From contig NIVC01000301.1 in assembly GCA_002269645.1 (NCBI GenBank), forward strand, positions 604,460-668,459: 64,000 nt of DNA, in the 5' to 3' direction. Numbering within the stretch: the stretch's first letter is position 1; each line of letters starts with the position of its first letter. Under the pieces are notes generated by a model. That model worked only from the letters and a program-made list of their open reading frames with translations, was not told where the DNA came from and searched no databases. Source of the DNA: Macrostomum lignano. Taxonomy: Eukaryota. Shown one piece after another: positions 58,001 to 61,000 of the stretch. Made by a program: the position numbers and the translations under genes.

Positions 58001-61000
58001 GGGTGAAACACGATTGCCGATTTGGCGATGCCGGATGTGCCCGCGGCGGGATTAGGGGGTTAGGGGGGGGGGTCAATTTTTCGATCGCGTAAAGCATTCG
58101 GGTCATAAAAGCATCTGATGCGTTGAAAACATTGGTCCCTTCCAAAGTGGTTAAGCTTGCGCTCATGTTTGGATTTTGGTTAATTTAATTTGATATGTGA
58201 GGCTTAGAGCTGTGCATGCACACTGTAGTGTCACTCTGTATGCTGCATGAATATAAATTTTCTATGCTATTGCCTCTTTTTTTACCATTTTGTTGCCTAA
58301 CGGTCACTTTAGTAATGCCAAGCCTCTGTTCGTAGTTACCCTGCGACCTTGAACCCCCAATTCTGGACTTCTATTGAGGTGCTAACTGGCTGATTCCTGA
58401 ACAATTGCTGATCAAATTCCACCGTCTCCTTCTCAACTAACTCCGCGCGATTAAAGCTCAATGCTCACCTTGGCCGAACTGAACCCGTCATCTCCAGGTA
58501 CTGGTCGTCCCTGCGCAACCTGGTGATCTCCCTGCTCAACTCGATGCGGTCGATCATCTCCCTGCTGTTCCTGCTGTTCCTCTTCATCCTGATCTTCGCC
58601 CTGCTCGGCATGCAGCTGTTCGGCGGAGAGTGAGTGCCGGAGAGCTAGTATCAGTAAATGAGCACCCTTGATAGGTAGTTTGGGTTCTTCTCGCCAATGA
58701 GGGCAATCCCCAGGGCGCAGAGAGAGTACCTGCCTGCCCTGTGTTGAGAAGGTCAGGTCTTGAAACATTGACTTGAAAAAAAACTGAAAATGATGGAGGC
58801 GTGAAAGCCCAAATATATTCGATCCTCAAAGTGGAACTCCACTAGCTCCTACTGACCATTTACAGGGGATAGAAAGTGAGCAGGGATCAGGATAGGAAGA
58901 GCTTTATCACCTCAATCGATCGCTTATAACCTCCAGCATGCAAAACGGCTCTAATGTTGTCCTTGCAGGTTCAACTTTCCGGAGGGCCGGCCGGCTCAGA
59001 ACTTCGACACATTCGTCAAAGGCCTGCTCACGGTGTTCCAGGTGGGAAGGCGCTTCGCCTCGTGCGCCCCAGCTTTTTAATTATTCATGGGAAAAATCAA
59101 TTTCACCTGCTGGCTTAGAGATCCGGGCGGGTGGGAATGAAAGACGGCACTACCTGGTTGAGTTGTTTTGAACTTTTAGCTGAGATTGTGCTTTGCTCCG
59201 TTGTTTTTTTCAAAACTCACCAGTCCAATAGTGAGTTGCAATGACCCCATGCAGCAAGAACTTCATCAACTGGTTGACGACCTTGATGCGTAGCCAGGTG
59301 AGGGGGCAAGTGGGGGCCGTGGCCCTCCCCTATCGATAGGCCCTAACTATACTCGTCAAACTGGTTGGCCCTCTTTGCAAAGTGACGGCAATTTTGCATG
59401 CTCGGTGCAAAACATTACTGAATAAGCGCTGGCATTGCTTAACTTGCTAATTATGTTAATTGCTAATACTCGTAGATTGCCCCAACGGTAGTTTTGCACA
59501 GTTTGTTTTTTGCCGTAAATTTGATATTTCCTTTCTACGAGCGTATTAATTTACATTTGGGTGCAAAACTCTTTAAGAAGCATTTTTAATTGTATTAAGA
59601 GTACAAAGTTAATAGTACTGTCTGAATTAATAGTATAAGTATATGCAGAAAGCAGGTTTATTAACAGCTCAGGTTAGAAAAAGCGTCAGAAAATGTGAGA
59701 GCGCTTCTGAGCGCTACTGACAGACAGACAGACAGACAGACAGACAGACAGACAGACAGACAGACAGACAGACAGACAGATAGACAGACAGACAGACAGA
59801 CAGACAGACAGACAGACAGACAGACAGACAGACAGACAGACAGACAGACAGACAGACAGACAGACAGACAGACAGACAGACAGACAGACAGACAGACAGA
59901 CAGACAGACAGACAGACAGACAGACAGACAGACAGACAGACAGACAGACAGACAGACAGACAGACAGACAGACAGACACACAGACAGACAGACAGACATC
60001 CAGACATACAGACACTAAGACAGACAGACAGACAGACAGACAGACAGACAGACACTAAGACAGACAGACAAACAGACAGACAGACAGACAGACAGACAGA
60101 CAGACAGACAGACAGACAGACAGACAGACAGACAGACAGACAGACAGACAAACAGAAAGACAGACAAACAGACAGACAGACAGACAGACAGACAGACAGA
60201 CAGACAAACAGACAGACAGACAAACAGACAGACAGACAAACAGACAGACAGACAGACAGACAGACAGACAGACAGACAGACAGAAAAACAGACAGACAGA
60301 CAGACAGACAGACAGACAGACAGACAGACAGACAGACAGACAGACAGACAGACAGACAGACAGACACACAGACAGACAGACAGACACTAAGACAGACAGA
60401 CAGACAGACAGACAGACAGACAGACAGACAGACAGACAGACAGACAGACAGACAGACACTAAGACAGACAGACAGACAGACAGACAGACACTAAGACAGA
60501 CAGACAGACAGACAGACAGACAGACAGACAGACAGACAGACAGACAGACAGACAGACAGACAGACAGACAGACAGACAGACAGACAGACAGACAGACAGA
60601 CAGACAGACAGACAGACAGACAGACAGACAGTAAACCTCCCCATTTGGCACGGGACGCACCAGGTGCTGACCAGCGAGGACTGGAACATGGTGATGTACG
60701 CGGGCATTCGCTCACAGCGGACTGCCAACTCGTCCGGGATGTGGGCCGCGGCCTACTTTGTGATCCTGCTGCTCTTCGGCAATTGTATCCTTTGCAAGCC
60801 ACCGGGATTTCGCGAGGGGGTCCCAGAGTTTGATTGACAGTTTGTGCTTTGTTACTGTGCTCTTAATGCAGCACGAGACTCCAGAGTTTTCAGTTGTACA
60901 TGAACTACCAACATCGCATCCGCAATCCATGAAGTCCCGAATGCTTTCCCAGTTGTGTAAAAGTTTTTTTTTTGACCAAGCTTCTGCAAATGACTCGCAT

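Follow-up and report, generated by a model that had tools for sequence, protein, structure and literature searches.

Many invertebrates carry few ion channel genes, and exons that swap part of the pore on an either-or basis are a known route by which they diversify them. The case described here lies in 64,000 nucleotides (nt) of Macrostomum lignano DNA (contig NIVC01000301.1, positions 604,460 to 668,459 of the forward strand), referred to below as the window and numbered from its first letter. The window holds part of a Cav2-type calcium channel gene in which the exon for the selectivity-filter turn of repeat II, and for most of the following transmembrane segment (IIS6), is present in two versions. 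The upstream version, exon a, encodes the filter sequence TSEDW, and the downstream version, exon b, encodes the canonical TGEDW. On the evidence of its coding sequence and splice sites, exon a is likely to be the upstream member of a tandem, mutually exclusive pair.

Either-or pore exons in described channels

Exons 15a and 15b of NALCN, a four-repeat cation channel, offer a close parallel. They too are mutually exclusive tandem exons that cover the repeat II pore loop, filter position included, and they occur in lophotrochozoans, among them planarians. They switch the filter residue itself between Glu (calcium-like) and Lys (sodium-like) (Senatore et al. 2013, in PMC4436565). The Macrostomum gene, by contrast, belongs to the Cav2 family, and both of its exons keep the filter Glu and the Asp that follows it. 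There is no difference in the high-field-strength filter residue of the kind that separates 15a from 15b, and only the residue before the Glu, the adjoining loop and IIS6 distinguish the two exons.

Exons 12a and 12b of the Lymnaea Cav3 gene likewise form an either-or pair for a pore module of repeat II, and their effect on ion preference is proven. What they encode, however, is the extracellular S5-P1 turret and no part of the filter, P2 helix or S6; a lysine and the pattern of cysteines set the two apart, and the channel is of the T type (PMC4436565, PMC9694082). In vertebrates, homologous tandem exons of Cav1.2 (8/8a, IS6) and of the Cav2.x genes (37a/37b) swap an S6 segment or another module, with altered gating and pharmacology. 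These pairs lie in a different repeat or in the C-terminus, and they exclude the filter turn (PMC12149502, PMC5740500).

The predicted mode of splicing also has precedent. A U12-type site on one side of an exon and a U2-type site on the other block the joining of one alternative exon to the next (Letunic 2002 and Smith 2005, in PMC5740500). Such U2/U12 incompatibility is the mechanism in 5 of 629 human clusters of mutually exclusive exons (0.79%), and frame incompatibility in 60% (PMC5740500). At the Macrostomum locus the arrangement is predicted from motifs alone and would act together with a frame shift. Calcium channel genes in general are enriched in minor introns (PMC12149502).

In the literature searched, no Cav2 channel has been reported with an either-or pair that spans the filter turn together with IIS6 in repeat II. 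The pair described here is best seen as a further case of pore-exon switching, itself a familiar phenomenon, at a site unreported for Cav2 in that literature. What sets it apart is that the donor of an ancient U12 intron was duplicated along with the exon. We know of no report of a duplicated U12 donor flanking Cav1.2 exons 8/8a or Cav2.x exons 37a/37b.

A Cav2-type gene with two repeat II pore exons

When 240 retrieved homologues were mapped back to the window with tblastn, they outlined one gene on the plus strand, which spans at the least the stretch from 46222 to the end of the window. The exons of repeats I and II and of the beginning of repeat III fall within 46222-63954, and together they cover the N-terminus, IS1-IS6 with the repeat I filter TMEGW, the I-II linker, IIS1-IIS6, the II-III linker and IIIS1-S2. 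Against the Pfam family Ion_trans (PF00520), repeat II reaches 194 bits in isoform a and 193 bits in isoform b. The beta-subunit interaction motif of the I-II linker (QQ-E--L-GY--WI---E) is found at about 54290-54370. In a search of solved structures the best whole-sequence matches were human Cav2.2 (288 bits), Cav2.3 (276) and Cav2.1 (263), ahead of all Cav1 (at most 229) and Cav3 (at most 189) channels. By this comparison the gene is a Cav2-type, that is, non-L-type, high-voltage-activated, calcium channel alpha-1 subunit. The end of IIS6 (LFGNYTLLNVF..ANAQELT) is also Cav2-like. Diagnostic exon sequences such as DTFVKxLLTVFQ are common only to flatworm Cav2 proteins among the matches, so that for these exons the closest relatives, as judged by sequence, are flatworm Cav2 genes.

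The features of the repeat II pore region are as follows (a slash marks an exon boundary):

58498-58629, plus strand: constitutive exon, IIS4-S5 linker and IIS5; 91-95% identity to other Cav2 proteins
58969-59041, plus strand: constitutive exon, repeat II turret and pore helix P1; U2-type donor CAG/gtggga
59719-60631: (GACA)n microsatellite of about 228 units, ending 32 nt upstream of the exon a acceptor
60664-60784, plus strand: exon a, 121 nt; filter TSEDW, P2 helix, P2-S6 loop with N-S-S, and outer two thirds of IIS6
60673-60678, plus strand: codons AGC GAG, Ser followed by the filter Glu
60727-60735, plus strand: N-S-S sequon (AAC TCG TCC) in the P2-S6 loop
60785-60793, plus strand: U12-type donor of exon a, GTATCCTTT, full match to the consensus
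61180-61297, plus strand: exon b, 118 nt, the canonical TGEDW version
61298-61304, plus strand: U12-type donor of exon b, GTATCCT(AG); longer reading GTATCCTAG
62387-62394, plus strand: U12 branch-site motif TCCTTAAC, branch A about 31 nt before the acceptor
62425-62525, plus strand: shared downstream exon, inner end of IIS6 and start of the II-III linker; ..caag/ACACTCTATTGAAC, read as (Y)TLLN

Each of the two exons has its own AG acceptor and GT donor, starts in phase 0 and ends after the first base of a codon. Exon a (cag/GTGCTGACCAGCGAGGACTGG...TTCGGCAATT/gtatcc) begins cag/GTG and ends AATT/gtatcc; its translation (60664-60783) gives 40 residues, VLTSEDW...RTANSSG..., plus the first base of the next codon. 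Exon b (cccag/ATTCTGACAGGAGAGGACTGG...TTTGGCAACT/gtatcc), about 400 nt downstream, gives 39 residues. No further copy of this exon is present in the window, and the introns that flank the two are unrelated except for the donor heptamer. The exon a Ser aligns with G662, and the filter Glu with E663, of human Cav2.2. The filters that fall within the window thus read TMEGW for repeat I and T-S/G-E-D-W for repeat II, with Glu and Asp in both exons, while those of repeats III and IV lie beyond it.

An earlier note on this DNA had set pore exon a against exon b as isoforms. The sequence comparisons agree in that exon a looks like a genuine alternative to the canonical exon b of a Cav2-type gene. The translations also agree with the note's finer observations: Ser (AGC, 60673-60675) stands in place of Gly immediately before the filter Glu (GAG, 60676-60678), exon a is one codon longer than exon b (40 vs 39), the post-filter loop of exon a carries an N-S-S sequon, and the start of IIS6 differs between the two exons. 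The IIS6 sequences do differ, as the note said, but the change is in part normal Cav2 variation, since human Cav2.3 has SSGMWSAIYF at that point.

Splice sites and the choice between exons

The heptamer GTATCCT directly follows both exons, as GTATCCTTT after exon a and GTATCCTAG after exon b, and corresponds to the U12-type donor consensus RTATCCTY. U12 donor motifs are sparse in the gene: the plus strand of 46000-64000 has three, all at exon ends. Between 59042 and 62425 the sole U12 branch-site motif is TCCTTAAC, before the shared downstream exon; none was found in that interval upstream of exon a or exon b, whose acceptors look U2-type, and the upstream donor at 59041 is U2-type as well. 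Neither 121 nor 118 nt, nor their sum of 239, is divisible by 3. Because of the U12 donors, the single branch motif before the shared exon and these exon lengths, splicing is predicted to be strictly either-or.

The proposed pathway would begin with the U2-type donor at 59041, which would join the acceptor of either exon a or exon b. The U12 donor of the chosen exon would then be spliced by the minor spliceosome to the exon at 62425. Joining of exon a to exon b would be blocked, as a U12 donor would face a U2 acceptor, and inclusion of both exons or of neither would shift the frame, so that productive mRNAs would carry exactly one. Exon b is probably the default and exon a the regulated choice, because exon b has the better acceptor pyrimidine tract (pyrimidine fraction 0.73 vs 0.55) and the exon a acceptor comes 32 nt after the (GACA)n array.

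Arrays of the same (GACA)n unit also occur at 8040-8676 and 36669-37398, and the one before exon a probably belongs to a repeat spread through the genome and has no particular role in splicing. The idea of a regulatory hairpin across the exon b donor was considered and rejected. The only inverted repeat in 59042-62424 is one of 14 nt (61299-61312 and 61439-61452) with 86% complementarity. The region folds no more stably than shuffled sequence (z = 0.38), and the repeat is attributed to chance.

The usual spacing between a U12 branch site and its acceptor is 10-26 nt, so the roughly 31 nt that follow the branch A near 62387 exceed the mammalian optimum. That this motif is real is nevertheless supported by another U12 intron in the gene, which has the same extended motif at nearly the same spacing. 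This intron, of the AT-AC type, occupies 46293-46505 (GG/ATATCCTTTT...TTTTCCTTAACC...cac/G), between the N-terminal exon (..YAKIIIEWG) and IS1 (PFEYMVLL..). In this intron the branch motif, TTTTCCTTAACC, lies at 46466 and places the branch A some 30 nt short of the intron end.

A U12-type donor at this exact position in repeat II is, on comparison across animals, ancient. The trematode loci of Opisthorchis (L003) and Dicrocoelium (L004) have GTATCCTTT at the same site; in the cestode Schistocephalus (L005) the donor there has changed to gtacgc. A run-through peptide, GN-CIL, which is the U12 donor read as protein, turns up in fragments from fish, from the limpet Lottia and from many contigs. 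The duplicated donor in Macrostomum would make a tidy case of splice-site incompatibility enforcing exon choice, a mechanism that is rare, with less than 1% of human clusters.

Selection on exon a

Exons a and b are identical at 24 of 39 residues (60%) and at 71 of 117 nucleotides (61%). Thirteen codons are the same in both, 11 differ only synonymously and 15 change the amino acid. By the Nei-Gojobori method the proportion of synonymous differences (pS) is 0.68, which is near saturation, and that of non-synonymous differences (pN) is 0.31. Differences fall at codon positions 1, 2 and 3 in the ratio 15/8/23, or 11/3/18 once seven hypervariable loop codons are set aside (p = 0.005). When the same 46 substitutions were scattered randomly over exon b, 0 of 100,000 such neutral simulations kept 24 identical residues. 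The residues common to both exons (L-T-x-E-D-W-N-x-V-M-Y-x-G-I-R-S-Q, G-M, Y-F and L-F-G-N) are the constrained ones. At third codon positions the GC content (GC3) reaches 0.875 for exon a and 0.82 for exon b, compared with 0.48 for the intervening intron, whichever frame is taken.

By these measures the two exons are an old tandem duplicate, with both copies intact under purifying selection at the protein level. The near-saturated synonymous sites and the outcome of the simulations therefore point to retention of exon a as coding sequence, and exon a is very likely functional.

The serine variant and the tandem layout in other animals

The earlier note had called TGEDW highly conserved and had proposed a survey of TSEDW among metazoan Cav2 proteins. 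Among 330 repeat-II-type motifs in all the retrieved proteins, TGEDW accounts for 323, and in this sample the statement holds. TSEDW occurs three times, and TEEDW, TQEDW (in a Cav3), TGENW and TGEEW once each. TSEDW is found in a nematode-like Cav2 represented by three independent samples (L001, L011, L012) and in a Cav2-like gene of a compact-genome animal represented by two (L009, L010). A scan of metagenomes added two Cav1-like TSEDW exons (L040 and L044), and one Tara Oceans contig (L002) also has the motif. Independent samples rule out sequencing error for the two Cav2 lineages, and error is possible for the single Tara contig. The related variant TEEDW is present on 8 contigs (P0047, loci L006-L008).

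These constitutive TSEDW loci share with exon a the change from Gly to Ser and the retention of Glu and Asp. They differ in that the Ser exon is the sole copy in its locus, whereas in Macrostomum it alternates with a canonical exon of the same gene. In the two Cav2-like lineages the other filters of the locus keep the Glu as well (TMEGW, TGEGW and TGEGW in L009/L010; TGEGW for repeats III and IV in L011). Since TSEDW is the only exon version in Cav genes of other animals, it is, so far as sequence comparison goes, a rare but recurrent natural variant compatible with an ordinary working channel. It is a rare departure from TGEDW, but to call it non-canonical, as the earlier note did, overstates the case. 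The string TSEDW is not mentioned in this sense in the literature searched.

Relatives of exon a itself were sought in several ways. Searches of protein collections with the exon a isoform, and with a concatenate of 424 amino acids, gave best matches of about 80-81% identity, and exon a alone returned no candidate. In a representative library only canonical exons appeared, at 69% identity or less, and the best locus of the metagenome scan reached 72%. Tandem duplicates were also looked for in neodermatan flatworms and are ruled out at the four loci concerned (L003, L004, L005 and L013), each of which has one copy. Both types of flatworm paralogue share 67-72% identity with exon b and only 45-60% with exon a.

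A tandem layout with a duplicated U12 donor does exist, on sequence evidence, in at least one other animal. In the protein P0242 (UniParc UPI00060F11D9), a run-through of genomic DNA, this exon occurs twice in tandem, both times with TGEDW and with GN-CIL (GTATCCT) after it; the first copy has a short loop (GIKAKKSMAASAYF). Orthology of exon a with this upstream exon, or with the short-loop exon of Cichlidogyrus, is unsupported, as identity is only 45%. An annotated stick-insect protein, P0241 (Timema bartmani CAD7447876.1), starts with four concatenated, near-identical copies of the exon, which may be a genuine array of exons that the annotation ran through, or else an error of assembly.

Alternative explanations

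Several observations weigh against a working either-or pair, and most of them would fit a different history, in which exon a is a dead or dying duplicate, a pseudo-exon that is never spliced or spliced only unproductively. The exon a acceptor is weak, with a pyrimidine tract of only 0.55 placed 32 nt after a 0.9-kb microsatellite, and the branch motif at 62387 stands about 31 nt from its acceptor. The protein, library and metagenome searches found no orthologue of exon a, which leaves conservation across species unsupported, and the collections searched hold no transcript evidence for it. The neodermatan relatives Opisthorchis, Dicrocoelium, Schistocephalus and Cichlidogyrus have a single TGEDW exon. 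The signal of selection, moreover, covers the whole path between a and b and is compatible with a recent loss of exon a use. Against decay, the frame of 40 codons is open, the acceptor AG is in place and the 9-nt U12 donor is a perfect match to the consensus. The residues preserved in the face of near-saturated synonymous sites are all structurally constrained ones, a pattern the neutral simulations never reproduced, and GC3 is of the coding type, quite apart from that of the flanking intron. We consider the pseudo-exon history improbable. Still less credible is an artefact of assembly, in which two haplotypes or collapsed paralogues were placed in tandem. The region is extremely rich in tandem repeats, which could favour such an error, but the exons differ at 39% of nucleotides, their flanking introns show no relationship beyond the donor heptamer, two more exon pairs of the same gene have a tandem layout, and the independent sequence P0242 has the same layout of this very exon. 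Such an artefact is very improbable indeed.

A different question is raised by the suggestion, made in the earlier note, that the exon a isoform differs materially in permeation (conductance, Ca/Ba/Na selectivity or Cd block) by virtue of its Ser and bears an isoform-specific N-glycan. The change does adjoin the filter Glu, at a position that is Gly in 98% of the sampled Cav1/Cav2 sequences, and two either-or pairs of repeat II pores, 15a/b of NALCN and 12a/b of snail Cav3, do change which ions the channel prefers (PMC4436565). Unlike NALCN 15a/b, however, exons a and b share the filter Glu and the adjacent repeat II Asp, which the literature regards as a ubiquitous determinant of calcium selectivity and terms a 'beacon' (PMC4436565; PMC10120453). 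What the residue ahead of the filter Glu supplies to the inner filter is a backbone carbonyl (PMC10120453), and in repeat I of the same channel the equivalent residue is Met (TMEGW). A side chain is therefore permitted there, and a small polar Ser is plausibly tolerated. Other animals, as noted, have Cav genes in which TSEDW is the sole version. With the Glu and Asp kept and the Ser position acting through the backbone, a change of ion preference like that of NALCN 15a/b is not expected, and the effect of Gly-to-Ser on conductance or block is likely to be modest. A material difference in permeation together with a glycan therefore seems unlikely.

The glycan part of that suggestion is doubtful in its own right. 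The N-S-S sequon is present in exon a, and alignment with Cav2.2 puts it on the extracellular side, in the P2-S6 loop. The loop is only about 10 residues long, however, and the Asn falls about 3 residues before the GMW... that starts IIS6. Nilsson and von Heijne are reported to have found, in 1993, that a sequon needs about 12-14 residues of distance from a membrane-spanning helix if the oligosaccharyl transferase is to reach it. By that rule, applied through the Cav2.2 alignment, the N-S-S site is too close to the membrane, and for this reason the sequon is probably unused. Comparable sequons occur in the same loop of four other homologues, one of which (P0278, locus L052) has the closely matching SQKRQNSSG beside a canonical TGEDW.

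Likely effect on the channel

If exon a is used as one of an either-or pair, its isoform would be expected to remain calcium-selective, because the filter Glu of repeats I and II and the repeat II Asp are kept. The two isoforms would probably differ mainly in gating, inactivation or sensitivity to pore drugs, through the outer part of IIS6 and the loop before it. Exon a is 68% identical to the corresponding exon of human Cav2.3. With a modest functional effect likely and natural precedents for the Ser, such an outcome would come as no surprise to the field. If expressed, exon a would all the same amount to a minimal experiment of nature on what the residue ahead of the filter Glu, and outer IIS6, contribute to calcium channels of the presynaptic type.

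A stronger proposal is that the Ser and the alanine-rich outer IIS6 of exon a make a physiologically distinct Cav2, differing in conductance, divalent block or inactivation, and that each cell chooses between the two types as two U2 acceptors compete for one minor-spliceosome intron. This speculative reading is unlikely to hold; if true, an animal with a single gene would gain two pore types, as vertebrates do with separate Cav2 genes.

Other exon pairs and neighbouring genes

Two further tandem exon pairs lie in the same gene. One covers IS3-S4 (50669-50760, 92 nt, and 51361-51461, 101 nt) and the other IIS3-S4 (56015-56127 and 56811-56923, 113 nt each). None of these lengths is divisible by 3, and the first IIS3-S4 exon has a GC-AG donor (AG/gcaagt). 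In neodermatan flatworms the two versions are found in two separate paralogous Cav2 genes: the A-type paralogue (Schistocephalus, Opisthorchis and S. mattheei P0212) has the version like exon 1 and the B-type paralogue (Echinococcus, Taenia, Dicrocoelium and Cichlidogyrus) the version like exon 2. It looks, from these comparisons, as though splice isoforms of one lineage correspond to separate genes in another.

An Rfam scan of the whole window gave no match. Minisatellite arrays are exceptionally dense over positions 1-55000, where units of 12-44 nt recur tens of times and take up many introns as well as intergenic space; the tandem repeat finder listed 54 rows. Upstream of the channel gene lie several neighbours, identified from their translations only:

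1564-5406, minus strand: DEAD-box helicase-like exons
6137-7855, minus strand: open frame of 572 amino acids
10639-11076, minus strand: ankyrin-repeat frame
11529-12557, plus strand: retroelement reverse-transcriptase fragment
22712-23227, plus strand: EF-hand (calcyphosin-like) frame

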